Positions 2,097 through 35,231 of a DNA stretch of 35,231 nt are shown piece after piece. The stretch comes from Macrostomum lignano (Eukaryota), in the NCBI GenBank assembly GCA_002269645.1, contig NIVC01003868.1:1-35231 (forward strand). The letters run 5' to 3'. Position 1 is the first letter of the stretch. Each line of letters opens with the position of its first letter. Under the pieces are notes generated by a model that saw only the letters and a list, made by a program, of their open reading frames with translations, was not told the DNA's origin and ran no database searches. The position numbers and the translations under genes were made by a program.

Positions 2097-2773
2097 CTAT
2101 AACAAACTGCCACCCAGCCTGAAGTTTTTCACAATTTTTGCCATCTCTGTCAGGTTGGCAAAATACTCCGGTGTGTGAGTGATACCCCAGCTCGTCCCGC
2201 TCTTTCGCATGTCGTGAATGGCGTACACAGGCGGTGACGAGTCCGTAACCGCGTTGAATTTAGTCATGTCTGAGCACAGCTGCGTCAGGTTCTTCACCTT
2301 CCGAAGAAAGTACATTCTGGGGTCAATCCACCGAGCCAATTTGCTGCAACTTTTGCCTAGCTTCAAAATTCGATAGTCCTTAAAATGTTTCGACACACCG
2401 TCCAGAGAGTTGTTCTCGTACGGGTAGAAGCTGAACGAAGGCGGAACGTACACCCCTGCGAGTGGGTTGTTTGTCAGCGGGTAACGGATCTGGTACTGCT
2501 CCAAAGTGATCGTCAGACCTTCAGGTCCGGCAAAGGCGAGTATGTCTTCGCTAATCTTTCTCTTTGACAGCTGCTTGAGCACAAATCTGAAGAAAATGTG
2601 TCCAGGCGCAGACATGAGGAAGGCCGGACTGGCCGCAGGTCTTATCGCCAGTGAGGCCCGAACAGTTGCAGCGAGTGCGTCTCTGGCTCGCGAGTGACCA
2701 CCGCGTAGAAGCGACGAAACTCGTCCAGACTTCGCACCAGCTTGTAGTCCAGGTCCGCGTACACGCCGCCGAG
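2097..2773 (-). pseudogene. Glycosyltransferase copy 1, exon 2 (1-bp frameshift at ~2647; true pseudogene or assembly error)
   Basis: Acceptor ACAG|CTC GGC GGC GTG TAC GCG GAC CTG GAC (LGGVYADLD); 677 bp versus 678 bp in copy 2; CG at 2646-2647 versus CGG at 11271-11273. Confidence 0.8.
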
Positions 2774-3161
2774 CTGTCACGATTTGAATTAGGGTTTTTT
2801 CAGGGCCATTGCACGAATGCAAATATCACAGCAAGGTAGTTCGACATATGTAATTTGTTATGTTAGGTGTAGCAACGCACGAAAACCAGGCGCATGTAGG
2901 TCTGTCCCACATACATTTACAGTGTATCAGTAGGGATACATGTGTAAATATTTATTGCCGTTCATCAGCCATGACGAGGAAGCAAAAAGGCATTATGACT
3001 GACTTAATTCCTGTGTGTAAGGTGTGAACATGACGTGATTAGTTTTAGACGATCCACCTCTGATTGAAGTTTAGCAGAATTCATTAAACTATATGTACTC
3101 GAGGATATTCAAAGGAGAAAACCGATTTTTAAAATTATTTTTGCAGCGATTTTCGACATAC

Positions 3162-10721: not shown

Positions 10722-11399
10722 CTATAACAAACTGCCACCCAGCCTGAAGTTTGTCACAATTTTTGCCATCTCTGTCAGGTTGGCAAAATACTCCGGTGTG
10801 TGAGTGATACCCCAGCTCGTCCCGCTCTTTCGCATGTCGTGAATGGCGTACACAGGCGGTGAGGAGTCCGTAACCGCGTTGAATTTAGTCATGTCTGAGC
10901 ACAGCTGCGTCAGGTTCTTCACCTTCCGAAGAAAGTACATTCTGGGGTCAATCCACCGAGCCAATTTGCTGCAACTTTTGCCTAGCTTCAAAATTCGATA
11001 GTCCTTAAAATGTTTCGACACACCGTCCAGAGAGTTGTTCTCGTACGGGTAGAAGCTGAACGAAGGCGGAACGTACACCCCTGCGAGTGGGTTGTTTGTC
11101 AGCGGGTAACGGATCTGGTACTGCTCCAAAGTGATCGTCAGACCTTCAGGTCCGGCAAAGGCGAGTATGTCTTCGCTAATCTTTCTTTTTGACAGCTGCT
11201 TGAGCACAAATCTGAAGAAAATGTGTCCAGGCGCAGACATGAGGAAGGCCGGACTGGCCGCAGGTCTTATCGGCCAGTGAGGCCCGAACAGTTGCAGCGA
11301 GTGCGTCTCTGGCTCGCGAGTGACCACCGCGTAGAAGCGACGAAACTCGTCCAGACTTCGCACCAGCTTGTAGTCCAGGTCCGCGTACACGCCGCCGAA
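10722..11399 (-). CDS. Glycosyltransferase with DXD sugar-binding motif (GT32 / Gly_transf_sug; OCH1/SUR1-like), copy 2, exon 2
   Basis: Acceptor ACAG|TTC; FGGVYADLD motif; open to the stop at 10722. Joined CDS 11794-12264 + 10722-11399 = 1149 nt, 382 aa. Confidence 0.9.
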   Translation of the reverse strand, partial: FGGVYADLDYKLVRSLDEFRRFYAVVTREPETHSLQLFGPHWPIRPAASPAFLMSAPGHIFFRFVLKQLSKRKISEDILAFAGPEGLTITLEQYQIRYPLTNNPLAGVYVPPSFSFYPYENNSLDGVSKHFKDYRILKLGKSCSKLARWIDPRMYFLRKVKNLTQLCSDMTKFNAVTDSSPPVYAIHDMRKSGTSWGITHTPEYFANLTEMAKIVTNFRLGGSLL

Positions 11400-11793
11400 C
11401 TGTCACGATTTGAATTAGGATTTTTTCAGGGCCATTGCACGAATGCAAATATCACAGCAAGGTAGTTCGACATATGTAATTTGTTATGTTAGGTGTAGCA
11501 ACGCACGAAAACCAGGCGCATGTAGGTCTGTCCCACATACATTTACAGTGTATAAGTAGTGATACATGGGTAAATATTTATTGCCGTTCATCAGCCATGA
11601 CGAGGAAGCAAAAAGGCATTATGACTGACTTAATTCCTGTGTGTAAGGTGTGAACATGACGTGAATAGTTTTAGACGATCTACCTCTGATTGAAGTTTAG
11701 CAAATTTAATTAAACTGTATGTACTCGAGGATCTGCATCTTCGAAGGAGAAAACAGATTTTTAAAATTATTTTTGCAGCGATTTTCGACATAC

Positions 11794-12264
11794 CTTGAGC
11801 AGTAGCATGTAGCGAATCATATCGATCCGCATGATTTTCAGCTCCAGCGACCTGAACTTGTCCAGTAGTTCAGGGAAGTTCGCGGCCACGAATGGCTCCA
11901 GGTCCTGGTCGCGCCACAGCACGTAGGTCCAGTCGGGATGAATTCTCTGCCAAGATTTTACTTGCTGAGCGAAGTAGTCGGATATGAACTCATTGCGCCA
12001 GAGAATGTGCCGAATTTTCGGTATCGGGAGAGTGCCGCTTGCGCTCATGTGATTTTCATAATGTCGCCTGCAGCTCTCGTTTGCACAGACAGTCGGTAAG
12101 AAAGTGTGCAGCGCGGACGGAAACATGTCAGTAGTTTGTTCGAGAATCACACCGTCGATGCTTAAATCTTCAAACAGTGACGCCATTAGAGAAAGGCCTG
12201 CGTAGCCAAGCATCAGGAGGACAGTCCCGGATACTATTGTTCTCCGCTTGCTGCGGACTAGCAT
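11794..12264 (-). CDS. Glycosyltransferase copy 2, exon 1 (type II membrane anchor, stem, start of catalytic domain)
   Basis: ATG at 12264: MLVRSKRR then hydrophobic TIVSGTVLLMLGYAGLSLMASLF; IPKIRHILW, WQRIHPDWTYVLW, RIDMIRYMLL; phase-0 donor AAG|GTATGT. Confidence 0.9.
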
Positions 12265-13149
12265 TTCGGATGTGTTCGCGCTTGCGTAATGATGATGACA
12301 GACTTTAAACAAATTTCGTCCACAAATTAGGTAAATGTGTCCATGCTCTTGACTAATAATTCTAGCTGAGCCAAACCAACAGCTACAGCAGCCTAGTGTG
12401 TGCACACGGAAGTGTTGAGACTCATGAAATGCTTCCCTGAGTACATTTATACACACAAGTGTCTACATTCTGACTTCAGGTGCACAGCCTTCCCCTGTGT
12501 CAAAGAGAATTTAAAACTTCCCACCCCAAACTCATACCCCATCTTAGTTTCTCTCCCCTGACTGTACAATCCTGCCATTCTGCCTATGATTTTCATCCTG
12601 GCCTGTCTTCACCTGGTATCACCTGCGATGGAAATAGGGGAACAAAAACGTGTAGCCAGTTCCCACCGATAACTCAAATTCTTTTGGGTGCATGGCTTGA
12701 ATGAACGTATAACCTAATCCCAATATCTTCCCATTGGCTGTGCAACGAAAAGCAGACAGTCTTCTCAAGTCATTTAGAAGGTAGTTTCTGAAAGCCGAAG
12801 AATTCAATGAACTGTAGAGATTGCAGTTTTATTGGAATCTCTAATAAAGCGTGTTTTTATTTACGTTGCGCAGCTCAACGCGAGAGGGCGCCGCTGCCGT
12901 TCAAAATTTTACATTTTCGCAACAATATACTTACAATATACAATATAAAATGCGGGTCTTCATCGCTTAGGGGCCTGCAAGGCTGTGCTCGATCGCCCAC
13001 TCGCTCCTCTCCGCCTCTTCGCTCCGGACATTATTGAACATAAATCTTCATAATCAATATTCTACAGTTGCTGTCTGTAGTTTTCACAAAGTTAATGAAC
13101 CGTACTAGTCTACCGCATATAATATCACTGAGATCGAATCCATCTCTTA

Positions 13150-13853
<704 letters not shown>

Positions 13854-14432
13854 GGAGAGGTGGAGGCAAAGGGATAGGGAGAGGTGGAGGCAAAGGGAGA
13901 GGGAGAGGTGGAGACAAAGGGAGAGGGAGGTGGAGACAAAGGGAGAGGGAGTGGTGGAGGCAAAGGGAGAGGGAGAGGTGGAGAGGTGGAGGCAAAGAAG
14001 AGGGAGAGGTGGAGAGGTTGAGGCAAAGGAGAGGGAGAGGTGGAGAGGTGAAGGCAAAGGAGAGGGAGAGGTGGAGGGAAAGGGAGAGGGAGAGGTGGAG
14101 GCAAAGGAGAGGGAGAGGTGGAGGGAAAGGGAGAGGGAGAGGTGGAGGCAAAGGAGAGGGAGAGGTGGAGGGAAAGGGAGAGGGAGAGGTGGAGACAAAG
14201 GGAGAGGGAGGTGGAGACAAAGGGAGAGGGAGAGGTGGAGGCAAAGGGAGAGGGAGAGGTGGAGACAAAAGGAGAGGGAGTGGTGGAGGCAAAGGGAGAG
14301 GGAGAGGTGGAGAGGTGGAGGCAAAGGGAGAGGGAGAGGTGGAGAGGTGGAGGCAAAGGGAGAGGGAGAGTTGGAGAGGTGGAGGGAAAGGAGAGGGAGA
14401 GGAGGGGTGTAAGGGGGAAGAGGGAAAGAGAA
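13854..14432 (+). repeat. Purine-rich degenerate ~25-bp repeat (GGAGAGGTGGAGGCAAAGGGAGAG)
   Basis: Direct reading; abuts the ATAG array. Confidence 0.95.
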
Positions 14433-15073: not shown

Positions 15074-15823
15074 ATGGAGCCGAGGCTTCGAGTGGCGCTG
15101 GAAGCTGCAGAGGATGCTCTGCTGCAGTCGCTCTGCCAGCAGCTCGACTCTAATTTTGAGCTGACGGTCGGCGGCTACAAGGATTGGGACAAAGGAGAGC
15201 GAGTCCAGTCTGTGACGCATCACGTGGCCTGCAAGTCGCACAATCTGCGGTGTCTGAAGCTGCTGATTGACAGATTCGGATCGGACTGTTTGAAGTTCCG
15301 AAACAACTGGGATGAAACTGCGGTGCACCTGGCGGCGGAGCATCAGGATGACTCGTGGATGGAGCTGATTCGGGACACTCTAGGCATGAGCTGCTTTCAG
15401 GATACAGCCAGGTCTGGAAGAACAGTAGCCCATTATGCCGCTATGAACGAGATGAGCAATCTATCGTTGAAGTGGCTCGTCAAAAAGTTGGGATCTGGGT
15501 GTCTCGCAGTGCCCGACGAATACGGCGACACAGCAGTTCATCTAGCTGCCCAGTATCAGAGCACAGATTCCATGGAACTGATGAAGCGAGAGCTTGGGTC
15601 CGCCTGCTTCAATCAAAAAGGTTGGTTGAGCAGGACCGCAGTCCATTGCGCAGTTCTCAATCCTGACAGTGGCGCATCGCTCGAATGGCTGGTACAGGAA
15701 TGCGGCACCGCCAGTCTCACGGTTCCTGACGAAACTGGCAACGATGCGTTTCGACTGGCCGCCGATTGCCGATCGGCTGAGGCGCTTCAGTTTCTGACTA
15801 CTCAACTTGGTTTATCTCTTTGA
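15074..15823 (+). CDS. Short single-exon ankyrin-repeat protein (249 aa, ~6 repeats)
   Basis: ATG-to-TGA ORF with repeated TAVHLAA/TVAHYAA/TAVHCAV motifs; paralogous to both ankyrin blocks downstream. Confidence 0.85.
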   Translation: MEPRLRVALEAAEDALLQSLCQQLDSNFELTVGGYKDWDKGERVQSVTHHVACKSHNLRCLKLLIDRFGSDCLKFRNNWDETAVHLAAEHQDDSWMELIRDTLGMSCFQDTARSGRTVAHYAAMNEMSNLSLKWLVKKLGSGCLAVPDEYGDTAVHLAAQYQSTDSMELMKRELGSACFNQKGWLSRTAVHCAVLNPDSGASLEWLVQECGTASLTVPDETGNDAFRLAADCRSAEALQFLTTQLGLSL

Positions 15824-17198
15824 AGGCAGACTAAAACTCTTGAAGACTACATGTACCATCGATTCCCATTCTTTCTTGGATTTCTGTTCAGTTTTAAATT
15901 GCTTATTTAGACTTTTCTTGTCAAATCTGTTTATAACTCGTAATGAAGCTGTTTTCACCAAGTTTTGTATTAAATTACTCTCGTACTAACGTGTATAAAT
16001 TTAATGTTGTAAGATTTTTATTCAGTTATAGCACTTGTCAATGACTTTGACTTTTTTCTAATTGATGTGAAAAATAAACTGATTTACCTTCTATAAACTT
16101 TCGATAACTACAATATTAAAGTAAAAGGCCAAACAAATACGCTTTTCTTTAGTCTATGGCCTGGTCCAGATCAGGAATCCATAACTTTTACTCATTTTAC
16201 CTGCCACTTGCTTGCGTGACAAAAAGTGTATGGCAGTGTGAGACGGTCCCGCGTGTCAGTTATCGATATATTTATTGGCGTCGATGTACATAAAGATTGA
16301 GATGTACATTCCTTCATTAGTAGCGACAATTATTTAGCAACATTTGATTGCCTCTAAGGCACGGATTAAAACATTACACCTGTATCAAAAAGAGTATTTT
16401 ATTGTAAACACTGGATTTAGAACACGCATACTTTATATGGCTAAGCTAGACAATTTGGCTTTTACACCGCTTACCTTTGCTTACTTGCAACTCATTGTTA
16501 GTAAAATTCCATGAAAGCAGCAGCAATGATTCATCGGAATAAATTATACCCCAACTACCTAACTAGCTCGTTTATAGCTCTGAGTTAGAAGCTGACAGCA
16601 GGTAACATTTCAACCGCCTAAGCTGCCTTATTCTTCTAACCTCTGTATTATAAAAGTAAGCTAAAAATAATCAACTCTTAGAAAAGGATGGCTTGGATAG
16701 AACAGCCTTAAAAACTCAGTGATTCACTTTTCATAAAAATAACTGGCTGTCTACGTTCTTGTCTGCATAAGAGAAAACAAAATATAATGTAAAAAAACTC
16801 AAAGCTATATTTTGACAGCTGATGCAGTCTGTCATCCATTGCGGTGCAGAGACAGCGCGGCTATCTTTCAAATACAATGGAGGAGCTAGTGTCGAAAATG
16901 AGCCCGCTAAAGAACACTTTAAGAATCTAGAAAGCTACGAGCATTCCGGCTCAGGCAAGGACGACTAAAAAGAAATGAGCATCTGACCGTTTTAGATTAG
17001 CTTAAGTGTCTAAGCTTATATTTCTTAACACTGGAGATACTCTGTCATTCTTTTTGTCTTGACAACTAACGAACGCCCTAACGTGCGACCAAGCGGCCAG
17101 TGCTCGTGTCGTTTCTGCCTATTTAAGCCAGCAGACAAAAGACACTGCAATAAGTAAAAAAGTGCGTTTTCGAAGACATAAAGCAGCAAAGCAGCCTA

Positions 17199-18775
17199 AT
17201 GGAGTCAACTCTGAGAAAGGCTCTTGAAGCAAGAGACGATGGACAGTTGCAACAACTCATTCCTCTGCTTCGAACCAACTGCCAGATGACAGTTGGCGGC
17301 TACAGCTACTTCGTCAATCGGGAATGAACTCAGCCGATTGCGCATCACGTGGTCTGCAAGGTGCGCAATCTGCAGTGCCTGAAGCTCCTGATTGAGAAAT
17401 TCGGACCCGACTGTCTGACTTGCAGAAACGACTGGGCCGAAACCGTTGTGCACCTGGCTGCTAAGCACCAGGACGCCTCTTGGATTCAGCTGGTTCGAGA
17501 CGCTCTTAGCGAGGACTGCTTCAAGGAGAAGACTAAGTCGGGTAAAACAGTGACTCACTATGCAGCCATGAATGAGGTGAACAACTCGTCGCTTTTGTGG
17601 CTCGTAAAACAGCTGGGACGCCATTGTCTCACAATTCCTGACAATGATGGAGACACAGCCGTCCACACGGTCGCAGAGTATCAAGGCGTCGGTTCGATGG
17701 AACTGATAAAGAGAGAGCTCGGAACCGACTGCTTTAAGGACCTGGCAGGTTATCGGAATAGAACAGTTTTTCACAGTGCTGCTACAAACATTGGAACCAA
17801 TGCGGTGCTAAAATGGCTAGTCAAAAAGTTCGGATCCGAATGTCTTAAAATTCCTGACGAAGACGGAAACACGGCTGTTCTTCTCGCCTCTGCGTCTCAA
17901 GGTGTCGAATCGATGAGAATGATAAAAAGTGAGTTAGGATCTGAATGCTTCCTTCAAAAAGGAGGTAATCGAAACAGGACGGCCGTTCACTGCGCTGCTA
18001 CTAACAATGTGAACAGCGAAACACTGAAATGGCTTGTCAAGGAGTGTGGACCCGAAAGCCTAACGGTTCAAGACAGATTTGGAGACACACCGGTTCATCT
18101 GGTTGCACAATACCAAGACACTGATTTGATGGAGCTGATTAAGAAAGAGCTCGGTTCAAGATGTTTTCATTTGAAAAACCGTGACAAGCAGAGTGCAATT
18201 CACTTTGCAGCTATGAATCCAACAAGTAGCTTATCGCTAGCTTGGATTGTAAAAGAATGCGGAAGTGACTGTCTCACAGTTGCCGATGAAAGAGGACACA
18301 CGGCTATCCATCTAGCTGCAGAGCATCAAGGTGTGGATTCCATGAATCTGATACAGAGAGTGCTCGGTTCTGGCTGCTTTCCTGATATTAAAGGCTTTCG
18401 GAGCAGAACAGCATTCCACTACGCTGCCTTAAATTCAAGTTGCGCAACACTCGAGTGGCTCGTCGATGAGTTAGGACAAGACTGTTTGATAGTGCCCGAC
18501 AGTGACGGAAACACAGCCGTCCATCTTGCTGCCCAGTATCAGTCCGATAAGTCGCTCCAGTTTCTATCTGACCAACTTGGGCCACTGATTTTCTCCTTGA
18601 AAAACAATAAAGGAGAGACATTGGCTGACTTTGTGGAGAAGGCTGCCGATGCAGACCGCAGAGCCAGGAACCGGGCTTGGATTGCCAGCCAGCTGTCAAT
18701 GAAGCCTGATTCAGCTCCTAGTCAGGTGTGCCATAAACCAATTACAGCAACTGCAACTAATGACTATTCGAGTCG
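17199..18775 (+). CDS. Ankyrin-pseudokinase-kinase gene, exon 1 (ankyrin block A, ~12 repeats; in-frame TGA at 17325-17327)
   Basis: ATG 17199 (MESTLRKALE, homologous to MEPRLRVALE at 15074) is in frame with ORF 17349-18779; phase-2 donor CG|GTGAGT at 18776. Confidence 0.8.
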
Positions 18776-18943
18776 GTGAGTTAATCAATATCCCATATTT
18801 TGTTGGCAGAGAAAATTTTTATACCTGGAACGCGTGTTGTTAGCTGTGAAGACTTCAATTATGAAGCCGATAAAATTCATTTTTTAGCTTTAAACATTGG
18901 ACCAGCGAATCTTAAATCTACCGACATTACATTTCGATTGCAG

Positions 18944-20525
18944 AAGCCTTTATGAGTCCCGGCTGCGAGCAGCGCTGGAAAAAGGAGATGAGGAACTGCT
19001 GCAGCGGCTTTTCCAGCAGCTCGACTCCAACTTTGATCTGAGCGTCGGTGGCTACAAAGACTTTTCCAAAGAAGAAAAAACTCAATCCGTGGCCCATCAC
19101 GTAGTCTGCAAGTCGCGCAGTCCGCTGTGTTTGAAGGCCTTGATTAACAGGCTCGGAGCAGAATGTCTGACTTGCACGAACGATTGTGGGGAGACACCTG
19201 TGCACCTGGCTGCAAAGTACCGCACCGACTCGTGGATGGTGCTACTTCAAGACTCACTGAAAAATGATCTCCTCTTCAACAAGAAGACCCGATCTGGCAA
19301 AACGGTAACTCATTATGCTTCCATGAACAAGGTGAGCAATGCCGCATTGAAATGGATTGTGAAAAAATTTGGACGCGACTGGCTCACGATTCCTGACGAG
19401 GATGGCAATACCGCAGTCCACCTTGCTATTCAGTGTCAAGGTGTCGATTCAATGGAACTGATAAAAAAAGAACTTGGTACTGACTGCTTCAAACAAAGAG
19501 TTGGTCACCATAAAAGAGCGCCTTTTCATCTTGCTGCGATGAATTCCGATAGCACAGCACCACTTGAGTGGCTCATCAGAGAGTTAGGCTGCGACTGTCT
19601 CACAGTTCCCGACGAAGACGGAAACACGGCCGTACATCTTGCCGCTCAATATCAGGGCGTCGATTCGTTGCAACTGATAAAGATAGTGCTCGGGCGTGAA
19701 TGCTTGTATCGAATGAAAGGCTTTCGAGACAGAACGGCCGTTCATTGCGCTGCTACAAATCTCGTAAATGACATAAATCTTGAATGGCTTGTTCAAGAGT
19801 GCGGATCCCAGTGTCTTACAGTTCGCGACAAACACGGAGACACAGCCGTCCATCTGGCTGCCCAGCACCAGTCAGCCGAGTTGCTGCAGTATCTGGCCGA
19901 CCAACTTGGACATCAGATGTTTGCTCTGAAGAACAGTAAAGGAGAGAACATTTCTGACTACGTAAGAATGGACAAGCATAGTGATAGGAAATTCAGAAAG
20001 CTGTCTTGGTTGGCCGGTGAGAAGTCACCAAAACAGCCTAATCAGCCAGGGCCGCGTCCGAATGTTCGAAAGTTCGAAGATGGTCGAACGTCGGTGGCAC
20101 AAATAAAATATTCCCAAAAATCTTGCAGTGTTCGCGCTGCTAACAGTATGAACAAAAGTAACAATTGCAGTACCGCATCAACAGTTCAAAAGCCCAGAAC
20201 AGTACCTCAGCCATTGAAAAAGCCGATCATTCGCTCTGGCGAATTCGGCAAGGTGTACACGACTCTTGCTGACCAAATCCAGACTGCAGCCACCAAGATT
20301 CTCGCCAAAAAGTCGTTAGAACTGAAAATATTAGAAATAGAAATACGAGCAGTCAAAGATATTATTTATCCCACCAGCATCCGGCAGTTTCTCAAGTGTG
20401 AGTTCCTGAAGACTGGCGGTTTCTACAGCCTCGATGTGCTTGTCTCCGGACACAGCCTATTTGAGTTGATAGAGAGACAGCTAAACCTGATTCCACAGGT
20501 GGATGTAGCAGAGTTTGCGCGTCAG
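18944..20525 (+). CDS. Ankyrin-pseudokinase-kinase gene, exon 2 (ankyrin block B, ~8 repeats, linker, pseudokinase N-lobe)
   Basis: Acceptor TTGCAG|A completes codon CG|A in phase; SGEFGKVY and AATK kinase N-lobe motifs; phase-0 donor CAG|GTTAGT. Confidence 0.85.
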
Positions 20526-20759
20526 GTTAGTTTAATTACAAAAGCTCCGTGTCTTGGAGCTAATTTGACTCTATTCTGTTTGACTTTGACGATATTAACG
20601 TATTGCTCTTTTTAAGTGACAGATATTAAATTGCAATGATGTGAGCTAAAAACTGGTTCAAATATTTAATAAATGAATCTGCTTTTAAAAGTTCTTAAAC
20701 AGTGATTCTATTTGCGATTAGACAGGCACAATGAACCCTAGCTCAACACCAAATTCTAG

Positions 20760-21172
20760 GTCTGCTCGGGCCTCAGATGTCTAGATCGCCAACGACATTT
20801 CACTGCGCACAGCAGTGCATTGTGCTCAAACATCGTGATCACTACTGACGGTCTTATCAAGGTTATCGACTTTCCTCAGGCCGTGGCCAGCTGCGGACTC
20901 AGCACGAACCCGAGCGGGACCAACCACTCCACGGCACCCGAGCTACTCGGATGTGCGGTGTTTGAGTTAAAAGAAACGCAGCAACCAAGCGGGGATGCTG
21001 CGATGTTCCAGATCCCGATGCTCACCCTGACCGACTCTGCGATGCCGAAGCCTTCTATGCGACTGGTAACTGCTCTGTCGAAATTTTATCGACGCTGCAA
21101 GGAATTTGACGCAAAGAGGGTGAAAAATTCCTCGGAGATGCTGCAGCACAGCTCAGGAAGCACACCCTCAAG
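20760..21172 (+). CDS. Ankyrin-pseudokinase-kinase gene, exon 3 (pseudokinase C-lobe)
   Basis: Acceptor TTCTAG|GTC; VCSGLRCLD...HSSALCSNIVITTDGLIKVIDFP...APELLG; phase-2 donor AG|GTGAGT. Confidence 0.8.
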
Positions 21173-21853
21173 GTGAGTGAGGGTTCATTTTTTGTATAAT
21201 GCAGATAGTCGAACTTTTGTGAAAGTCCGAGTGTGGTATTGAGCTTGAAATCGCTCTCAGATATCAGGATTCAAGCTCGTTGAACATTTCACGTCCATGA
21301 GCATCACCAACAAAAAAGACACATAGCCTGTACCAAGGACCACTAGAAGTTATCTTCGTATCGTCGTTATATGAGCGTACCGCTGATGCAACGGTAACTT
21401 CTAGTGGTCTTTGGTCTGTACATTCCTGGTGATAAAGAGATCTGTGTCGTCGTTGTAAAATCAAGTGTGAGTACTCGTATCTGAGTGCCATGGGTCAATG
21501 CAATATACTGTACCTACGAGTATGACTACCACCTAAGTACGAGTTTACTGCTATTTTGTCTGCTAAAACGGACGTCAGTACGGGTAGAAAGAGGCATTCA
21601 AGTGCTTTTTAGATTCAGGAATCGGTCAGTTTTTTTCATGAGAAAAAATTCTAACTAAAGCATGGATAAAAGGCTATTCAGCGATAGCATACTGAGAGAT
21701 TTCAGCCACTTGAGTCAGAATTAGTTTAACATAAGAATGCAACAGCGTATTTTGATTTTCCCACGCGGAAAGTCAAAGCTAGGTAAAAATAAGGTAAAAA
21801 AGGAGCACAATGCTGAAAAAAACTTTCATCTATAATAATTTGTACCTATGCAG

Positions 21854-22217
21854 CACGGAGGAGCCACTTTACCAGGAAAGCTGGACCTCGGTTAGACTCA
21901 TCGGCAGGGGAGGTTTTGGCGAAATCCACGAAGTCATCACCGACAAGGGCATCCGATGCGCTACAAAGACTCTCAAGCTGCCCATCCAGCTTGGCGATGA
22001 GCTTGAAACTCTTGAAAGAGAGGTCAACGGAGCTGTCGAGAGTGAGAAGAACCTGCGCCGTCTGCAGCACGACAACATTGTCAAGTTCTTGGACGTTGCT
22101 CAGCCCGAGCCAGCGACACTCGTCGTGTTTATGGAGTTGCTGGACGGTCGCACCTTAGAGAATTACATTAACAACAAACCACTCGATGAAAAAACGGTTC
22201 GTCATTTCAGTAAACAG
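21854..22217 (+). CDS. Ankyrin-pseudokinase-kinase gene, exon 4 (intact kinase N-lobe)
   Basis: Acceptor ATGCAG|C completes AG|C in phase; IGRGGFGEIH, CATK, alphaC Glu, HDNIVKF; phase-0 donor CAG|GTAAAA. Confidence 0.88.
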
Positions 22218-22375
22218 GTAAAAAGTTTTCCCATGTAACTGCTCTGGTCAGATCTGTTTTGTATTGTGCAATACGAGTGTACGCTTTGATTGCCTTTTCA
22301 AATCTCTTCCTTACGACATTTGACTCTACTAGACTAGATCCAATGCCAAATGCTGCTCAATAAAAACGATTATAG

Positions 22376-22867
22376 ATCTGCAGTGCCCTGCTCTACATGC
22401 ACAGCCAAGAGCCACCTGTGATTCACAGAGACATCAACTGCACCAACATCATAGTTCTTGTCGGCAACTCACGAATCAAGCTGATCGATTTCGGCCTGTC
22501 AATCAAGCTGGAGCAGTCAGTCAGTCACATCTCAGCCTCTTCTCAAACACCCAAGGGCACTCTAAACTTTATGGCACCTGAGTTACTGGGATCGGGTGAA
22601 TCAGACAAAACGTTATACAGCAAAAGTGCCGACATCTGGGCGTTCGGCTGCTCGGTCTTCCAGATGGCCACCGGAGCAAGACCTCACGCCGACACCAGAA
22701 GCTTGCTGAAAATGGCCATGAAGCTGTCGAACGACGGAGCCCCCGCTCTGTCAGCTGATTGCTCCCCAGATCTGCAGGATTTCTACAGCTGTTGCACCGC
22801 CAAAAACCGAACTCTGAGAAAGTCCGCGGCACACTTGATGAGGCACAGGTTCCTGACTACAGACTGA
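22376..22867 (+). CDS. Ankyrin-pseudokinase-kinase gene, exon 5 (Ser/Thr kinase C-lobe, STE/MAP3K-like)
   Basis: Acceptor TTATAG|ATC; HRDINCTN, DFG, GTLNFMAPE, DIWAFGC; stop at 22865-22867. Confidence 0.9.
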   Translation: MCSALLYMHSQEPPVIHRDINCTNIIVLVGNSRIKLIDFGLSIKLEQSVSHISASSQTPKGTLNFMAPELLGSGESDKTLYSKSADIWAFGCSVFQMATGARPHADTRSLLKMAMKLSNDGAPALSADCSPDLQDFYSCCTAKNRTLRKSAAHLMRHRFLTTD

Positions 22868-25520: not shown

Positions 25521-26155
25521 TCACGTGGTCAAGCCGCCAGTGGGAACGCCGCTGTACACGAAGCTCATTAGCCCGACGGTGAGGCAGAGGTAGAGCCAGA
25601 AGAACAGCCGGTCCACACACCTGGCCAGAGCCACCCAGCCTTCAGGACCAGCGCACAAACAGGATGGAGCTTCCGGTACGTCAGCAGAGGCGCCTCCACG
25701 ACGCTGTGGTTGCGCCGGACCGGCAATGGTGGAGGCTCGTCTGGCGTTCGCCACGTAGGCGACGGAGCGTCGTCGGGAGAGCGGCGATGACATGGACGAC
25801 CGGCGTCGCTGGCATTCTTCAACCTGAGTTCTCAGCGCGGCCTCCTCGCTGCCGGGCTCGCCTCCCCGCGCCGAGCTTCCGTTGCGGCCGTCCTGCTGCA
25901 GCAGCACCGACCGGATGAAACGCGCGTTGCCGCCGCTGGAGCTGCCGAAGTCGCCGCTGTCGGGAGCGGCCAATCGTCGCAGAGTCTTCCTTCGCTCCCG
26001 GCAGGTGGGGCAGTAAAATCGGGAGATCCACGGCCTCACGCAGTCTGGCACTCGGCTGTTGGCCCGAGTGAACTTCCTGATGTGAACGTTGGTGACGATG
26101 ACGCCCATCAGCAGGGCCATGGACACCATCAGCATGGTCAGGCCGAATAGCAGCC
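25521..26155 (-). CDS. Nicotinic acetylcholine receptor alpha subunit, last exon (M3, intracellular loop, M4)
   Basis: Acceptor CCAAG|GG completes G|GG; GLLFGLTMLMVSMALLMGVIVTNVH...WVALARCVDRLFFWLYL; stop at 25521. Confidence 0.92.
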
Positions 26156-26267
26156 CTTGGACGTATTAGGGGGGGGGGGGATGGGTGAAGTGCAACTTAA
26201 TGTGGATGCGTGAGTTTCTTAGTTTTTCCGTACTTTGCGTACTTTTAATTTGTACTTTAAACCGCCT

Positions 26268-27128
26268 CTCTGCACCATGAGAATCGCCAACTCTGCACCA
26301 TGAGAATCGCCAACTCTGCACCATGAGAATCGCCAACTCTGCACCGTGAGAATCGCCAACTCTGCACCATGAGAATCGCCAGCTCTGCACCATGAGAATC
26401 GCCAACTCTGCACCATGAGAATCGCCAACTCTGCACCATGAGAATCGCCAACTCTGCACCGTGAGAATCGCCAACTCTGCACCATGAGAATCGCCAACTC
26501 TGCACCATGAGAATCGCCAACTCTGCACCATGAGAATCGCCAACTCTGCACCATGAGAATCGCCAACTCTGCACCGTGAGAATCGCCAACTCTGCACCAT
26601 GAGAATCGCCAACTCTGCACCATGAGAATCGCCAACTCTGCACCATGAGAATCGCCAACTCTGCACCATGAGAATCGCCAACTCTGCACCATGAGAATCG
26701 CCAACTCTGCACCATGAGAATCGCCAACTCTGCACCGTGAGAATCGCCAACTCTGCACCATGAGAATCGCCAACTCTGCACCATGAGAATCGCCAACTCT
26801 GCACCATGAGAATCGCCAACTCTGCACCATGAGAATCGCCAACTCTGCACCATGAGAATCGCCAACTCTGCACCATGAGAATCGCCAACTCTGCACCGTG
26901 AGAATCGCCAACTCTGCACCGTGAGAATCGCCTCTCTGCACCATGAGAATCGCCAACTCTGCACCATGAGAATCGCCGACTCTGCACCATGAGAATCGCC
27001 AACTCTGCACCATGAGAATCGCCAACTCTGCACCATGAGAATCGCCAACTCTGTACCATGAGAATCGCCAACTCTGCACCATGAGAATCGCCAACTCTGC
27101 ACCGTGAGAATCGCCAACTCTACACCAT
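26268..27128 (+). repeat. 23-bp tandem minisatellite (CTCTGCACCATGAGAATCGCCAA), ~37 copies, intronic
   Basis: Direct reading; the 23-aa periodicity of the spurious ORFs confirms the unit length. Confidence 0.98.
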
Positions 27129-28000
27129 TAACGACTACTATCAGTAGTCTTTACTAGGCGAGTCATTTTATCCCAGAATAGAATAAGCTCTACCAGAGAA
27201 GTGGAGCATTGTTCTGTAGACCTAAATCAGCCAATTAGCTAACTTTACGAGTAAGCAAGGCTCCAATTGAGCTTCAACATTGTAAAACAGACTCAGAAGT
27301 TTTTATTTAAGCTGTATAGCTCAGCTTGAAACACACGGTCACTTCCGCAATTAGTTTTGGTGAAGTTCTTTTCGGGCAGCAAGGGGAGGGGTTGTTGGTC
27401 CGCCGTTGTTCTATCGGATTAGGTGCAGGACACGACAAAGCCGCCTTGTTATTGGCAGTTGGTCTACTAGAATGCATTGTCACGCGCTGTCGTTACTCGC
27501 GTTCTGAGATCTGTTCATGCAATGTCTGCTATACAGTTTTGGTAGCAGCCTCAATCTACATGAAATAACCTGTGCACCAAGGCTTGAGTAGTTCAAAATA
27601 CGAGCGTATTTTCATTCAAAAAGGGCAACTTTGAGAATGGAAAAATTGCTGAAAATTTGCTTCAATAATAAATGACTGACATGTTTCCATACTGTTTGCA
27701 GCTTGTGTACGAATTGAAGTGGGGGGTCGCGAGAGGAGGCTGGATGGAGCCAGAGGGTGGAGTGTGGCTGCCCCATCATCCTCATCAATTTTTGTCCGGT
27801 AAATTTCCCGAGGGTAAGAAGAGCCTTGATGAGAAGCCTGTGACATACGCTGAGCACACATGCCTGCATAGTCAGCCGATGCTGATGAAGAACGATGGAT
27901 AAGAGAATAATTGAAGCAATATGGGGGATGATTTTGAAAGTTATGGAGGCCGGTAAGAGAACAGGATTTCCCACGAACATGATGAGCCATCGACCCATCG

Positions 28001-28560
<560 letters not shown>

Positions 28561-28576
28561 TCACCCCAACACTCAC

Positions 28577-29118
28577 CAACCAGCGGAATGGCATCAGGGG
28601 TGGGCGGCAGGGTGTCCCCCACAATGAGCAGGAACACCACCAGCGCCAGCAGAATGGTCAGCTCCAGGTTAACTTTCTCGCCGGACTCGATCGGCAGGAA
28701 GAACCCCAGGAAGCTGGCCAGGTACATGAGCAGGCAGGGGAAGATCAGATTGAAGATGTAGAACAGAGATCGCCGAGTCATGTCAATCGTAATGGTGACG
28801 TCAGGCCAGGGCTCCTCGCAGCAGGCGTACACTCCTATGGACCTGGAAAATGCGATCTTAGTGACATTCCACTCCTGATTGGCCTCGACGTAATAGTTCT
28901 TGTTGCTGTCCACTGTGTCATTGTGCCACAGGTCCACCTGGAACAGGTGGTAAGTCCAACTGATAAAAGTCACATTGCATCTCTGCTTGTCGAACGGGAA
29001 GAATCTGACATTGAGGGTGCAGGTGACTTTGATCAGCACGGGGAACATCCACAGTACGGAGCCGTCGCTCCACAGGATGGTGTTGGTTGTCATGAACTTC
29101 CGGCTGCTGTCCTCTGCG
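28577..29118 (-). CDS. nAChR alpha subunit, 542-bp exon (Cys-loop, loops B and C, M1, M2)
   Basis: CTLNVRFFPFDKQRC Cys-loop, SWTY, YACCEEPWPD vicinal cysteines, GEKVNLELTILLALVVF; acceptor CTGCAG|C, phase-1 donor G|GTGAGT. Confidence 0.95.
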
Positions 29119-29164: not shown

Positions 29165-29680
29165 CGATCGTATAGATCTAGAAATAGATCGTCTAGATCT
29201 GGAACTATAGATCGTCTAGATCTGGAACTAGATCGTCTAGATTTGAAACTACATTGGCTAGATATAACTAGATATAAAATAAATCGTACAGATCTAGAAT
29301 TAGATCTTATAGATATGGAACTAGATCATATAGATCTGGAACTAGATCGTCTATATTTGAAACTAGATCGTATAGATCTGGAACTTGATCGTATAAATCT
29401 GGAACTACATTGGCTAAATATAACTAGATATAAAATAAATCGTACAGATCTAGAATTAGATCATATAGATCTGGAACTAGATCTGGAACTAGATTGTATA
29501 GATCTGGAACTAGATCGTATATATCTGGAACTAGATCGTATAAATCTGGACTTGATCGTATAGATCTGGAACTTGATCGTATAGATCTGGAACTTGATCG
29601 TATAGATCTGGAACTTGATCGTATAGATCTGGAACTTGATCGTATAGATCTGGAACTTGATCGTATAGATCTGGAACAGA
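29165..29680 (+). repeat. 21-bp tandem repeat (GATCGTATAGATCTGGAACTT/A) with a ~155-bp higher-order duplication, intronic
   Basis: Direct reading; block ~29246-29306 recurs at ~29402-29462. Confidence 0.9.
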
Positions 29681-30171
29681 TACTGCAGCGAGATCCGATA
29701 CCCCTAAATCAATGCCCCAACACACTTTTAAACGTTATCTAACAAACTTAAGCAAAAACTTAAGTAGGTTATAAAGATTACCAACTCATAATTTACAGAT
29801 AGTAACAGCAGGAGTTTAATCAAGCTTCACCCATGCGTGGCTACATGCAATGTACCAGTCAATATTAGTGAAGTCCAGCACCGCTCTCTACTGAAGTCCT
29901 CGACGGCTTTAAGCGTTTTAAAAAAAGGCCGAGATCGAGGCTTCTCTGAATCAATCGATCAATATTGCTTTAACGAATGGCTTCGCCAACTCGGGTTATG
30001 ATTTTGGTGCGGTACAAGCCACTATGCTTGTGGACTTAAGGGGCTTAGGCATGTGATGAATAGCTTTTTTCATAAATATTTCTAAAACACTAAAGAAATT
30101 ATTTTGGTTTTTGATTAGAGACCGCTCCTAGTTGGTATAATATAATTGATATTGCATTTGCTAGTTTCTGG

Positions 30172-30865: not shown

Positions 30866-31209
<344 letters not shown>

Positions 31210-31805
31210 CAGAAACAGCCACAATAACACATATTTAAGCAGACTCTGGAAATGGAAAGATACCAAGTCAGACAGACACCGTACATGTATGTCAGTTTAG
31301 CAGACAAGCAGCAAGCAGACAGCAGACACAATGCCAAGGCTTAATTGGCCCCTGGACCTGGGGTCTGAATCTACAGTTCGAGCAGAGAATATAGGATTAA
31401 ATTTTGCTAGAGGAAGTTGATCTCTAATCAGTATTCAGAGTATCTCTACACTAACAAAATGAGTTAGCAGGCCGTGGAACCAAATTACTACAAGCCTGCA
31501 CTTTTATCTGTGTTGTTGCGAAGGCCTCACGGGTACAGTTCAAGCTAGATTAGCAAGGGAAAAAAGGAAAACGACTGTCTCAGTAAAGTCGGGTCTTTTT
31601 TTGCTCGGTACTTTCGAATTCAAATGCTACTGAAGTGGACTCCGGCTCGCCCTCCTTCTGTTCTTATCTGACCCCTGTCTTGTCCAATTCTTCACTACCC
31701 AGTGGATCCTGAAGTTCGGGGCAGTGTTTGCTCCAAGTCAACACAGTCCAGTCCAAGTCCCAGTTCAATGCTCCCACTTATTTAACTGAGAGTTGCTGGT
31801 AAAAC

Positions 31806-31915
31806 CTGTTGGAGATGATGATATCCGGGGTCCAGATTGCACTGGACGGAATGTGCAAGGACGTTGTGCCGTTGTAGTCCTCGGGCTGCCAAGCCAGGTA
31901 TTGATCCAGCCATCT
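31806..31915 (-). CDS. nAChR alpha subunit, 110-bp exon (loop A)
   Basis: [36 protein letters not shown]; acceptor TTTCAG|AGA, phase-2 donor AG|GTTTTA; 110 bp is a conserved nAChR exon size. Confidence 0.92.
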
Positions 31916-32014
31916 CTGAAATCGACCAATAGTTGACTTGAGTCTGGAAACTGTCATAAAGCAGTTGAACGGCAATATTGATTGGGAAAAGTTAAAGACA
32001 TTCTTCGACCTTAC

Positions 32015-32059
32015 CAGACGAACGGACATCAAGGCTGAGAAGGTCTGGTGCTTCTCGTC
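32015..32059 (-). CDS. nAChR alpha subunit, 45-bp exon; upstream exons not found in the window
   Basis: [15 protein letters not shown] (cf. DEKNQVLTTNIWLQM); acceptor CTTCAG|GAC, donor CTG|GTAAGG. The four exons total 1332 nt in frame. Confidence 0.9.
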
Positions 32060-32130
32060 CTGAAGTTGAGAAAGTTCTTGCTTTGAACATTGATGGATGC
32101 AGTGCTGGACTGTGAGTTCTGATGCGGCAA

Positions 32131-33875
32131 AGAGGGAGACAGGGAGGGGAGAGACGGAGAGGGAGACAGAGAGGGAGGGAGACAGAGAGGGAGACAGAAA
32201 GGGAGACAGAAAGGGAGACAGAGAGGGAAACAGAGAGGGAGACTGAGAGGGAGACAGAGAGGGAGACAGAGAGGGAGACAGAAAGGGAGACAGAAAGGGA
32301 GACAGAAAGGGAGACAGAGAGGGAGACTGAGAGGGAGACAGAGAGGGAGACTGAGAGGGAGACAGAGAGGGAGACTGAGAGGGAGACTGAGAGGGAGACA
32401 GAGAGGGAGACTGAGAGGGAGACAGAGAGGGAGACAGAGAAGGAGACAGAGAGGGAGACAGAGAGGGAGACAGAGAGGGAGACAGAGAGGGAGACAGAGG
32501 GAGATAGAGAGGGAAACAGAGAGGGAGACAGAGAGGGAGACAGAGGGAGATAGAGAGGGAGACAGAGGGAGATAGAGAGGGAGACAGAGAGACAGAGAGG
32601 GAGACAGAGAGGGAGACAGAGAGGGAGACAGAGAAGGAGACAGAGAGGGAGACAGAGAGGGAGACAGAGAGGGAGACAGAGAGGGAGACAGAGAGGGGAG
32701 AGACAGAGAGGGAGACAGAAAGGGAGACAGAGAGGGAGACTGAGAGGGAGACTGAGAGGGAGACTGAGAGGGAGACAGAGAGGGAGACAGAGAGGGAGAC
32801 AGAGAGGGAGACTGAGAGGGAGACTGAGAGGGAGACAGAGAGGGAGACAGAGAGGGAGACTGAGAGGGAGACTGAGAGGGAGACAGAGAGGGAGACTGAG
32901 AGGGAGACAGAGAGGGAGACTGAGAGGGAGACAGAGAGGGAGACAGAGAGGGAGACAGAGAGGGAGACAGAGAGGGGAGAGACAGAGAGGGAGACAGAAA
33001 GGGAGACAGAGAGGGAGACTGAGAGGGAGACAGAGAGGGAGACTGAGAGGGAGACAGAGAGGGAGACAGAGAGGGAGACAGAGAGGGAGACTGAGAGGGA
33101 GACTGAGAGGGAGACAGAGAGGGAGACAGAGAGGGAGACTGAGAGGGAGACTGAGAGGAGACAGAGAGGGAGACTGAGAGGGAGACAGAGAGGGAGACTG
33201 AGAGGGAGACAGAGAGGGAGACAGAGAGGGAGACAGAGAGGGAGACAGAGAGGGGAGAGACAGAGAGGGAGACAGAAAGGGAGACAGAGAGGGAGACTGA
33301 GAGGGAGACTGAGAGGGAGACTGAGAGGGAGACTGAGAGGGAGACAGAGAGGGAGACTGAGAGGGAGACAGAGAGGGAGACAGAGAGGGAGACAGAGAGG
33401 GAGACTGAGAGGGAGACAGAGAGGGAGACTGAGATGGAGACTGAGAGGGAGACAGAGAGGGAGACAGAGAGGGAGACGGAGAGGGAGACTGAGAGGGAGA
33501 CAGAGAGGGAGACTGAGAGGGAGACTGAGAGGGAGACTGAGAGGGAGACTGAGAGGGAGACAGAGAGGGAGACAGAAAGGGAGACTGAGAGGGAGACGGA
33601 GAGGGAGACAGAGAGGGAGACAGAGAGGGAGACAGAGAGGGAGACTGAGAGGGAGACAGAGAGGGAGACTGAGAGGGAGACAGAGAGGGAGACTGAGAGG
33701 GAGACTGAGAGGGAGACTGAGAGGGAGACAGAGAGGGAGACAGAGAGGGAGACTGAGAGGGAGACTGAGAGGGAGACTGAGAGGGAGACAGAGAGGGAGA
33801 CTGAGAGGGAGACTGAGAGGGAGACTGAGAGGGAGACTGAGAGGGAGACTGAGAGGGAGACTGAGAGGAAGACAG
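32131..33875 (+). repeat. 12-bp purine-rich tandem repeat (GAGAGGGAGAC[A/T]), ~145 copies, intronic
   Basis: Direct reading; gives the ETER/SLSV/LPLC periodic ORFs. Confidence 0.98.
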
Positions 33876-34314
33876 AAACACAAAAGAAAAAAGTAGAAAG
33901 ATCAAGTTCAAAAAGATCAGTCATTGTAGCACAAACATGTTTACTTGGACAATGTAAAAATAATTTCAATTGTTTTAATGCCGTTCAATGCACAAGCCCG
34001 CGATTTAATTTTAGCAATAAAATCTCTGTTTGCCTTTTGTTCGGAATCCCAATCAAACAGGTCTTTTTGTCTTCTAAAAAGGTTTTGTTTGTATGGCAAG
34101 AGAAGGATTTTTTCCCGTGCCCTCAGGCTGAGGGAAACTCAATGCAATTCTAATTTCCTGAATGTCCCGGGGACGAGAGGATTAAAGATTTCCTGATCAA
34201 GCTTCGAAAATTAACTGTCACGAACTGGGGATAGCCCGCCCGGCTACCGGGAAAAGATTTTTAATCAGTTTGAGTTGTTTGCCACATTGATGGTCTCGCG
34301 AGCAATGATCTTCG

Positions 34315-35231
34315 CTTTCACCCTTTCCTGTCTGCATCTCACCCTCTACTGACTGCATCTCACCCTCTACTGACTGAATCTCACCCTTTACTGACTGCAT
34401 CTCACCCTCTACTGACTGCATCTCACCCTTTCCTGTCTGCATCTCACCCTCTACTGACTACATCTCCCTTTCCTGTCTGCATCTCACCCTCTACTGACTG
34501 CATCTCACCCTTTCCTGTCTGCATCTCACCCTCTACTGACTGCATCTCGACCTCTACTGACTGTATCTTACTTGTATCCCACCTCTACTGACTGCATCTC
34601 ACCCTCTACTGACTGCATCTCACCCTCTACTGACTGCATCTCACCCTCTACTGACTGCACTCACCCTCTATTGACTGCATCTCACCCTCTAACCCTGACT
34701 GCATCTCACCCTCTACTGACTGCATCTCACCCTCTATTGATGATGTATCTCACCCTCTACTGACTGTATCTCACCCTCTACTGACTGCATCTCACCCTCT
34801 ACTGACTGCATCTCACCCTCTACTGACTGCATCTCACCCTCTACTGACTGCATCTCACCCTCTACTGACTGCATCTCACCCTCTATTGATTGTATCTCAC
34901 CTCTACTGACTGCATCTCTCACCCTCCTTACAGACTAAATCTCACCCCTCTACTGACTGCATCTCACCCTCTACTGTCCTGCATCTCACCCTCTACTGAC
35001 TGCATCTCACCCTCTACTGTCTGCATCTCACCCTCTACTGACTGCATCTCACCCTCTACTGTCTGCTTCTCACCCTCTACTGACTGCATCTCAACCCTCT
35101 ACCTGTCTGCATCTTCACCCTCTAGCTGACTGCATCTCACCCTCTACTGTCTGCGTCTCACCCTCTACTGACTGCATCTCACCCCTCTACTGTCTGCATC
35201 TCACCCTCTACTGACTGCATCTCACCCTCTA
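34315..35231 (+). repeat. 21-bp tandem repeat (TCTCACCCTCTACTGACTGCA), runs off the window
   Basis: Direct reading; 7-aa periodic ORFs. Confidence 0.96.

Follow-up and report, generated by a model that had tools for sequence, protein, structure and literature searches.

Mlig002601 of Macrostomum lignano, an ankyrin-repeat tandem kinase gene whose pseudokinase was probably acquired by exonisation of a paralog, in a probably disabled copy

The window examined here is a stretch of 35,231 nucleotides of DNA of Macrostomum lignano, a free-living flatworm (the whole of contig NIVC01003868.1, assembly GCA_002269645.1, Mlig_3_7), which carries a copy of the gene Mlig002601 between positions 17199 and 22867 of the forward (+) strand. 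The gene is real, was annotated before as coding for a hypothetical protein, and its architecture matches no well-characterised conserved family. The intact form has five exons and a product of about 1475 amino acids (aa), composed of an N-terminal cap (N-cap) with 12 ankyrin repeats, a second N-cap with 8 ankyrin repeats, a disordered linker, a dead kinase of the K2 type and a kinase of the K1 type, K1 and K2 being two kinase subtypes of an M. lignano ankyrin-kinase family. We consider it likely that the window holds copy g3 of this gene, with the order Ank-Ank-dead K2-K1, that this order originated from an exonised cassette, that K2 serves as a regulatory module, and that the window copy is disabled.

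The five exons sum to 4428 nt, and the four introns all begin with GT and end with AG, with phases (2, 0, 2 and 0) that match across the junctions. The first-pass annotation had arrived at this same spliced model from the letters of the sequence, but its description of the gene as hidden does not hold, as GenBank has it as BOX15_Mlig002601g3 (PAA49472.1, P0121), a hypothetical protein of 1352 aa with its coding sequence (CDS) at 17568-22867 of NIVC01003868.1, and the exons and introns are those of this RNA-seq-derived model. The same junctions occur in the independent RNA-seq-based GenBank models PAA70845.1 (P0001) and PAA49472.1. When 27 exonic sites of the window were set to the letters of locus g1 (L001), the product became PAA70845.1 exactly, and the exon-intron model is therefore the same as that of GenBank. 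The GenBank annotation has StringTie/TACO/TBONE RNA-seq assemblies as its source (PMC5730564), and the splice junctions are backed at the transcript-assembly level. One intron has the donor GTTAGT and the other three have donors of the GTGAGT or GTAAAA type; the acceptors are pyrimidine-rich and end in CAG or TAG.

All parts of the gene lie on the forward strand. The first in-frame ATG is at 17199, with an in-frame TAA upstream at 17151-17153, and the P0001 model begins with FEDIKQQSSL at about 17169, some 30 nt upstream of that ATG. A TATA-like string, TATTTAAG at 17120-17127, was read from the letters about 40 nt upstream of the 5′ end of the g1 model and is a candidate core promoter. Exon 1 (17199-18775) holds the ATG, the N-cap, ankyrin block B (12 repeats and a cap) and a linker, and ends in phase 2 at a GTGAGT donor, in the same phase and at a similar position as the ankyrin-exon donor of canonical family genes. 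Intron 1 (18776-18943, 168 nt, phase 2, GTGAGT...TTGCAG) would, if retained, close the open reading frame (ORF) at the TGA of 18777-18779; its spliced junction, SSR/SLYES, is found in P0001, P0121 and P0122. Exon 2 (18944-20525) contains block C (8 repeats and a cap, to about 19970), a low-complexity linker (about 19971-20210) and the K2-derived pseudokinase N-lobe (20211-20525), and ends in phase 0 at FARQ/VCSG. Intron 2 (20526-20759, 234 nt, phase 0) occupies a kinase intron position conserved across the family, after xxQ and before IC or VC. Exon 3 (20760-21172) encodes the pseudokinase C-lobe and ends in phase 2, and it is followed by intron 3 (21173-21853, 681 nt, phase 2), in which tblastn found no paralog exon remnants. 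Exon 4 (21854-22217, 364 nt) encodes the K1 N-lobe, with the glycine loop GRGGFG, the beta3 Lys in CATKTL and the alphaC Glu. Intron 4 (22218-22375, 158 nt, phase 0) lies at FSKQ/ICSA, and exon 5 (22376-22867) supplies the K1 C-lobe, with HRDINCTN at 22424-22447, DFG from 22487, APE, DIWAFG and the stop TGA at 22865-22867. No recent DNA-level tandem repeats were found within the gene.

Pfam recognised only ankyrin repeats and Pkinase in the product: the repeats in both N-terminal blocks and Pkinase twice, once in the middle domain, as a weak match limited to profile positions 7-171 of 263 (E 6.8e-10), and once in the last domain, as a full match (E 2.2e-48). The product ends 7 residues beyond this last domain. 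There was no Pfam caspase domain in this gene. Block B has 12 and block C has 8 occurrences of a helix-1 motif of the HxAA type, spaced at about 36 aa. This count of about 20 was obtained by a pattern search to which three missed repeats were added by eye, and each block has its own N-terminal cap (MExxLRxALE...VGGY) and C-terminal cap. The domain order and the roughly 20 repeats in two blocks, both proposed in the first-pass annotation, thus agree with the Pfam domains, the RNA-seq-derived annotation and the repeat count.

In the usual sequence definition, a pseudokinase has lost at least one of the beta3 Lys, the HRD Asp and the DFG Asp. By this definition the middle domain is a pseudokinase, and its sequence marks it as derived from K2 and not from K1. 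As anticipated, it is degenerate: the first Gly of the glycine loop is replaced by Arg, HRD has become HSS (in the region 20805-20831), DFG has become DFP (20868-20879) and, relative to K2, exon 3 has two deletions, one of 6 aa after DFG and one of about 20 aa that takes out the alphaEF/alphaF start (DxWAFG). The beta3 Lys, the APE motif and the C-lobe down to the natural K2 C-terminus (EMLQHSSGSTPS vs ELLRHSFLSASS) are retained, as are the K2 signature strings QFLKCE, LVSGHSLFEL, RQ(I/V)CSGL and CGLST. Aligned by MAFFT, the domain shares 40.6% identity with the K2 of P0007 and 26% with the adjoining K1, and we rejected on these values the idea that it is a recent duplicate of its neighbour. 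When a K2 domain was evolved neutrally in simulation to 41-60% amino acid identity it acquired 5-8 stops, and zero stops remained in at most 0.25% of the runs; because neutral runs almost always gain stops, the pseudokinase ORF appears to have been held open by selection through most of its divergence. A word-index homologue search with the pseudokinase alone returned zero matches, but it missed known self-matches too and is hence uninformative.

The C-terminal kinase K1 keeps the glycine loop, the beta3 Lys, the alphaC Glu, the HRD Asp, the catalytic-loop Asn, DFG, APE and the alphaF Asp, so that its canonical catalytic triad of beta3 Lys, HRD Asp and DFG Asp is complete in the alignment. Its catalytic-loop Lys is replaced by Asn, an unusual change found throughout the K1 subtype, where all 48 K1-type loops that keep the HRD Asp read HRD(I/V/L)N. 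It had been called an intact STE/MAP3K-like kinase; the catalytic triad bears out the first part of this but for the loop Lys, whereas the group assignment is less specific than stated, since the nearest among 60 solved kinase structures listed (WNK1/3, MAP3K2 and MST3/STK24) score near-equally, with E of about 1e-27. It carries HRDINCTN and DFGLSIKLEQSVSH, and is 66-68% identical to the K1 domains of P0005 and P0002.

By sequence, Mlig002601 belongs to a large family of ankyrin-repeat kinases that is so far confined to M. lignano. A homologue search with the spliced product gave close matches solely among M. lignano proteins, dozens of which were retrieved, and in a HMMER scan of 1.84 billion representatives with K1 as query all looked-up matches of at least 36% identity were from this species; the next tier, at about 25-33% identity, consisted of mixed multi-kinase proteins (oomycete, bird, fungus) and metagenome sequences. 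The expectation that this is not a described animal family is consistent with relatives above about 35% identity being all from M. lignano, and we found no paper that mentions Mlig002601 and no match for its expression or phenotype in the supplements of PMC5816591 and PMC7336406. The K1 subtype is recognised by HRDIN..DFGLSIKLEQSVSH, and the K2 subtype by QFLKCE, LVSGHSLFEL, FSRQICSGL and HRDIK(S/C)SN; among the retrieved proteins HRDIN..DFG occurred 44 times and HRDIK..DFG 19 times. Three features of the family were looked for in Mlig002601 and all were found, namely the cap with repeats of about 36 aa, the HRD(I/V)N loop of K1 with DFGLSIKLEQSVSH, and the gene plan. The caps, the repeats, the kinase subtypes and the positions and phases of the introns are shared with BOX15_Mlig029208g1 (Ank-K1), Mlig011736g1 (Ank-K2), Mlig014711g3/g4 (Ank-Ank-K1) and Mlig002250. 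The N-terminal 180 aa are 51-62% identical to paralogs, and tblastn with P0005 matched blocks B and C and the ankyrin-only block A upstream of the gene at 48-52% identity.

Other members of the family combine these domains differently. Mlig002250 (L007, NIVC01001141.1, 3001-6952; 1180 aa, kept in at least three genomic copies) combines conventional ankyrin repeats of 33 aa with two K2 kinases downstream of them that look intact, a single 924-nt exon coding for the C-lobe of the first kinase and the N-lobe of the next; the family has thus reached a tandem kinase by another, independent route as well. In Mlig009993 two K1 domains follow each other, the second of them degenerate. Fusions of a caspase (Peptidase_C14) with a family kinase and ankyrin repeats are present in P0183 (Mlig018903, in the order Ank-K1-like-caspase), P0175 (Mlig030125, in the order kinase-Ank-caspase) and P0167, and tie the family to cell-death machinery. 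Horkan et al. 2024 (PMC11463336) briefly mentioned that M. lignano has a caspase whose pro-domain is a kinase and which is sister to the flatworm ANK-caspases. Gene models in the family are unstable: at L004 (NIVC01004735.1, 1908-5437) GenBank splits Mlig014711 into g4, with ankyrin repeats only, and g3, whereas UniProt P0002 (1359 aa) fuses them.

In regards to the origin of the tandem arrangement, the canonical plan of the family is an ankyrin exon, a phase-2 intron, a kinase N-lobe exon (taken as about 360-390 nt), a phase-0 intron and a C-lobe exon. It is followed by P0005 (Ank-K1, L002), with an ankyrin exon, a phase-2 intron of 1166 nt, a 361-nt N-lobe exon, a phase-0 intron at FSEQ/IC and a C-lobe exon; by P0004 (Mlig014711g3), where two ankyrin exons, each followed by a phase-2 intron, precede a 367-nt N-lobe exon, a phase-0 intron and the C-lobe; and by P0170 (Mlig002250, Ank-K2-K2), which starts with an ankyrin exon, phase 2, an N-lobe exon and phase 0. 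Exons 1, 4 and 5 of the window match this Ank-K1 plan in the size of exon 4, in the phases and in the register of the acceptor, which lies 10 codons ahead of the conserved Trp, exactly as in P0005. Exons 2 and 3, in turn, form a symmetric phase-2/phase-2 cassette of 1995 nt (665 codons) that corresponds to a whole Ank-K2 gene body, without the ankyrin-to-N-lobe intron. Near its start, at 18952-18954 and one base out of frame, stands what seems to be a relic ATG, in the context ctttATGAGTCC compared with ctaATGGAGTCA in block B, a likeness that was judged by eye. At the other end, the natural K2 C-terminus abuts the GTGAGT donor of intron 3, which overlaps a TGA (21174-21176) at about the place where the K2 stop would lie.

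Because of the exon phases, the relic ATG and the C-terminus abutting a donor with its TGA, we infer that the cassette is most likely an exonised Ank-K2 paralog that lay within the phase-2 intron of an Ank-K1 gene. A complete Ank-K2 paralog would have come to sit in that intron and would have been taken in as a symmetric 2-2 cassette; its start codon would have ended up in another frame, a new GT donor would have come to overlap its stop, and its kinase would then have lost catalytic residues yet remained open and translated. Since the pseudokinase is of another subtype than the adjoining K1, Mlig002601 appears to be a fusion of paralogous genes and not a duplicated pair like that of the JAKs, to which the first-pass annotation had likened it. 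Among the loci examined, a pseudokinase sandwiched between the second ankyrin block and K1 was found only in Mlig002601, and L002, L003 and L004 each hold only one kinase type, so that the insertion is not general in the family. The near-identical ankyrin heads of P0005 and P0007 had prompted the idea of generic Ank-K2-K1 loci with mutually exclusive kinase cassettes, which these single-type loci rule out.

The uninterrupted frame of about 1475 codons that had been proposed for the window is broken by an in-frame TGA at codon 43 (17325-17327), which the first-pass annotation missed. Copies g1 and g2 both have CGA (Arg) there; only this contig has T at 17325, a C to T change at a CpG. Because of this stop the TransDecoder/GenBank CDS of PAA49472.1 starts at the ATG of Met124 (17568-17570). 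Copy g1, on another contig (BOX15_Mlig002601g1, PAA70845.1, 1485 aa, partial), is fully open; its product P0001 is 99% identical over its full length to the spliced window product, its 90% cluster also contains PAA49472.1, and 10.2 kb of its locus, collinear in the flanks, align with the window at 98.76% identity. Copy g2 (L005), which begins at a contig end, is 99.5% identical to the window, has three exonic 1-nt deletions and a 9-nt insertion, and its annotated product has only 513 aa. Errors in the PacBio consensus could explain the deletions in g2, if these are not true lesions, and likewise the T at 17325. The Mlig_3_7 assembly is very redundant, owing to extra large chromosomes in the DV1 line (PMC5730564).

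Given the CGA to TGA change, g3 is probably a null or hypomorphic copy, with g1 as backup. Under the scanning model the window copy would yield a 42-aa peptide from the ATG at 17199, and four exon junctions lie beyond the stop, which makes the mRNA a candidate target of nonsense-mediated decay. The most to be expected is a 1352-aa product that starts at Met124 and is truncated at its N-terminus. Between g1 and the window the overall ratio of non-synonymous to synonymous divergence (dN/dS) is 0.42, with 0.19 in block B and 1.14 in block C, and each kinase domain has a single non-synonymous change, which in K1 leaves all family-conserved motifs in place. The counts are too small to read selection from this comparison.

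As to how an intact protein might work, the two ankyrin solenoids would bind partners or ligands, K1 would be the catalytic output, and the dead K2 would be a non-catalytic regulatory, scaffold or decoy module beside it. This is the most likely scheme by analogy with JAK JH2-JH1, GCN2 and the plant tandem kinases.

Several observations weigh against the reading of Mlig002601 as a functional fusion with a regulatory K2. Two of its three copies are disrupted (the stop in g3, the deletions and insertion in g2). Between g1 and the window the exons have diverged by 0.61% and the introns by 0.48%, so that exons are not the lower, the differences in block C are 8 non-synonymous to 2 synonymous, and current constraint is not demonstrable from this comparison, the copies being too young. 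Near-identical copies share multi-mapping reads, and the expression of g3 and the dominance of the five-exon form rest on assembled models; transcript assemblers may join neighbouring paralogs. K1 has no catalytic-loop Lys (HRDIN), and its activity is assumed. AlphaFold2, run on the pseudokinase with a 26-sequence alignment, gave a mean predicted local distance difference test score (pLDDT) of 38 and no confident fold, with an N-lobe-like secondary structure and residues 141-200 predicted as unstructured. Finally, on the question of common descent of the Ank-Ank junction with that of Mlig014711, blocks B and C compared with the two ankyrin blocks of that locus give pairwise identities of 52-62% with weak bootstrap support. 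Taken to its end, this line would make the locus a set of decaying tandem paralog fragments, transcribed and spliced, non-functional and being lost after the recent M. lignano genome duplication, and the premature stop, the g2 frameshifts and 9-nt insertion, the degenerate kinase, the truncated ankyrin-only ORF upstream (copy A), exons no more conserved than introns and an assembly made redundant by extra chromosomes (PMC5730564) would all be in keeping with it. However, g1 is open over 1485 codons, K1 differs there by one residue and keeps the family motifs, the pseudokinase ORF has outlasted far more divergence than neutrality would permit, and copies that are 98.8-99.5% alike are too close for an informative comparison of exons with introns, which makes decay of the whole locus very unlikely in our estimation.

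The five-exon fusion itself could be minor or artefactual, the true product being Ank(B)-K1 with exon 1 spliced to exon 4, an Ank-Ank-pseudokinase ending at the intron-3 TGA, or both; the cassette of exons 2 and 3 (cassette C) would then be a paralog within an intron that is included only part of the time. Introns 1 and 3 are both in phase 2, so that skipping exons 2 and 3 keeps the frame and restores the canonical architecture in a product of 810 aa, a TGA follows directly after both phase-2 donors, and Mlig014711, split in GenBank and fused in an older model, illustrates the instability of family models. We nevertheless hold this to be quite unlikely, given that the exon 1-2 junction is in all RNA-based models retrieved for g1, g2 and g3, the exon 3-4 junction is in those of g1 and g3, and the exon 1-4 product was absent among the database proteins retrieved. 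Because cassette C stays open over 665 codons without an in-frame start of its own before residue 624 of the full model, it was presumably translated within the fusion. Another possibility, doubtful but conceivable, goes beyond the regulatory scheme and makes the intact protein a lineage-specific intracellular immune, cell-death or stress sensor in which, in the manner of plant tandem-kinase proteins or of JAK and RNase L, the ankyrin arrays or the pseudokinase would offer a decoy surface for a ligand or effector and so control the neighbouring kinase. The pseudokinase lies N-terminal to a kinase with the canonical catalytic triad and its ORF is preserved, and the large family, confined to one species, has members that differ in repeat number and in domain arrangement, among them the caspase fusions of P0183 and P0175, a fusion noted independently by Horkan et al. 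2024 (PMC11463336). The non-synonymous excess in block C (8:2) could also reflect diversifying selection, but its contrast with the other ankyrin block (6:9) is not significant (Fisher p = 0.10). Fast turnover and expansion are also typical of reproduction-related and other quick-evolving families, two of three copies are disrupted, and the analogy with plant tandem kinase proteins (TKPs), JAK and RNase L is architectural, the accessory domains and kinase groups that define those proteins being all absent here. The expansion of the family, its shuffled domains and its caspase fusions are compatible with a sensor role, which on such circumstantial support is a speculation. It seems improbable that the intact allele is a sensor in a flatworm-specific surveillance or cell-death system, an independent animal counterpart of the plant tandem-kinase receptors in which the dead K2 or the ankyrin arrays would be the bait that gates K1.

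We therefore keep to the exonised Ank-K2 cassette with a regulatory K2. If the full-length protein is made and active, Mlig002601 would be an animal tandem pseudokinase-kinase built recently by exonising a whole paralog in an intron, with the intermediates still visible (a relic start codon, a stop overlapped by a splice donor, and sister loci that either have or lack the cassette), and as such a clean case study for the birth of multi-domain signalling proteins and pseudokinases. The dozens of ankyrin kinases with the unusual HRDIN loop, some of them fused to caspases, hint that this genetically tractable, regenerating flatworm may have a signalling or cell-death module yet to be charted. In practical terms, the gene in the window had been annotated before and the copy found here is probably a null allele.

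Upstream of Mlig002601, copy A (15074-15823, forward strand) is an ATG-initiated ankyrin-only ORF of 249 aa, with an N-cap and about 5-6 repeats, whose identity to the heads of blocks B and C, taken over their first ~180 aa, is 58-59%. It then runs into a stop, followed by an AATAAA near 16073 (about 250 nt downstream). GenBank has no annotation for it; in P0123, an older model of 2404 aa from outside GenBank, it is joined by splicing to Mlig002601, whereas the RNA-based model omits it, and it is probably a separate truncated paralog. On the reverse (-) strand, 25521-29093 contains exons of a Cys-loop (nicotinic-type) ligand-gated ion channel (Pfam Neur_chan_LBD, E 9e-24; Neur_chan_memb, E 4e-14), with apparent introns full of micro- and minisatellites and no gene here among those called on the contig, and the ORF at 31778-33883 (-) contains an N-terminal fragment of the ligand-binding domain. 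A glycosyltransferase-like gene (Gly_transf_sug DXD region, E 6e-6) lies at 10722-12456 (-) and 2097-2822 (-), its C-terminal exon being duplicated about 8.6 kb apart with 181 of 182 aa identical. The two exon copies flank a GC-rich block (55-62%, about 5.0-9.0 kb) whose ORFs are without a Pfam match and whose translation partly recurs in the old fused model P0123; the block is possibly a retroelement, with the flanking duplication tied to its insertion or to an assembly artefact. Tandem arrays occupy 13150-14312, 26268-27128, 28001-28557, 29283-29681, 30866-31209, 32131-33876 and 34318-35231, with units including (ATAG)n in about 175 copies, (CTAT)n in about 139, (GACA)n in 86, a 12-mer in 145, a 23-mer in 37 and a 21/42-mer that continues past the contig end, and these very long arrays give rise to long ORFs on either strand that are spurious and account for the strong skews in GC and AT.

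Compared with known systems, the plant tandem kinase proteins (WTK1/Yr15, RPG1, WTK4 and Pm36) resemble Mlig002601 in that a single polypeptide carries kinase and pseudokinase in tandem, in having arisen from fusion or duplication of family paralogs, and in belonging to lineage-specific, fast-evolving families. The kinases of Mlig002601 are however of animal type, with WNK and STE kinases nearest and not RLK/Pelle, and the 60 solved structures listed for K1 included no plant RLK or IRAK/Pelle, with WNK, MAP3K and STE20-type kinases instead. The long N-terminal ankyrin arrays and the order of pseudokinase then kinase also set Mlig002601 apart, and any likeness to the immune role of the plant proteins is suggested by architecture. 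In the JAK family (FERM-SH2-JH2-JH1) and in GCN2, a pseudokinase is likewise placed just N-terminal of, or beside, an active kinase, and a regulatory role of the dead domain as in these proteins is plausible by analogy. Unlike them, Mlig002601 has no FERM/SH2 or HisRS/RWD domains by Pfam, its loop HRDINCTN is not that of a tyrosine kinase, and its two kinase domains come from two subfamilies instead of being a duplicated pair with co-evolved contacts.

Ankyrin repeats are found N-terminal of a kinase fold in ILK and TNNI3K, both of the TKL group, and in RNase L, and combined with a protein-kinase fold in RIPK4/ANKK1 and DAPK1; none of these was among the 60 solved structures listed for K1 (E of at most 1e-20). 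Mlig002601 differs from all of them in its two capped ankyrin modules and two kinase folds and has no KEN RNase or death domain, Pfam giving no match to a KEN ribonuclease after the kinase of the RNase L/IRE1 kind. The WNK kinases are the best-scoring solved relatives of K1 (WNK1, E 4e-27) and share with it the motifs PP(V/I)IHRD..C.N and GT..FMAPE. It is a hallmark of WNKs that the beta3 Lys is replaced (by Cys) and the catalytic Lys relocated to the glycine loop; membership of K1 was rejected, as CATKTL keeps the beta3 Lys and the glycine loop GRGGFGEIH is without Lys. Closer to home, the flatworm ANK-caspases and the caspase with a kinase pro-domain meet the family in P0183 and P0175, which unite the same type of kinase with ankyrin repeats and a caspase, whereas Mlig002601, without a caspase, joins its ankyrin blocks to two kinase folds.

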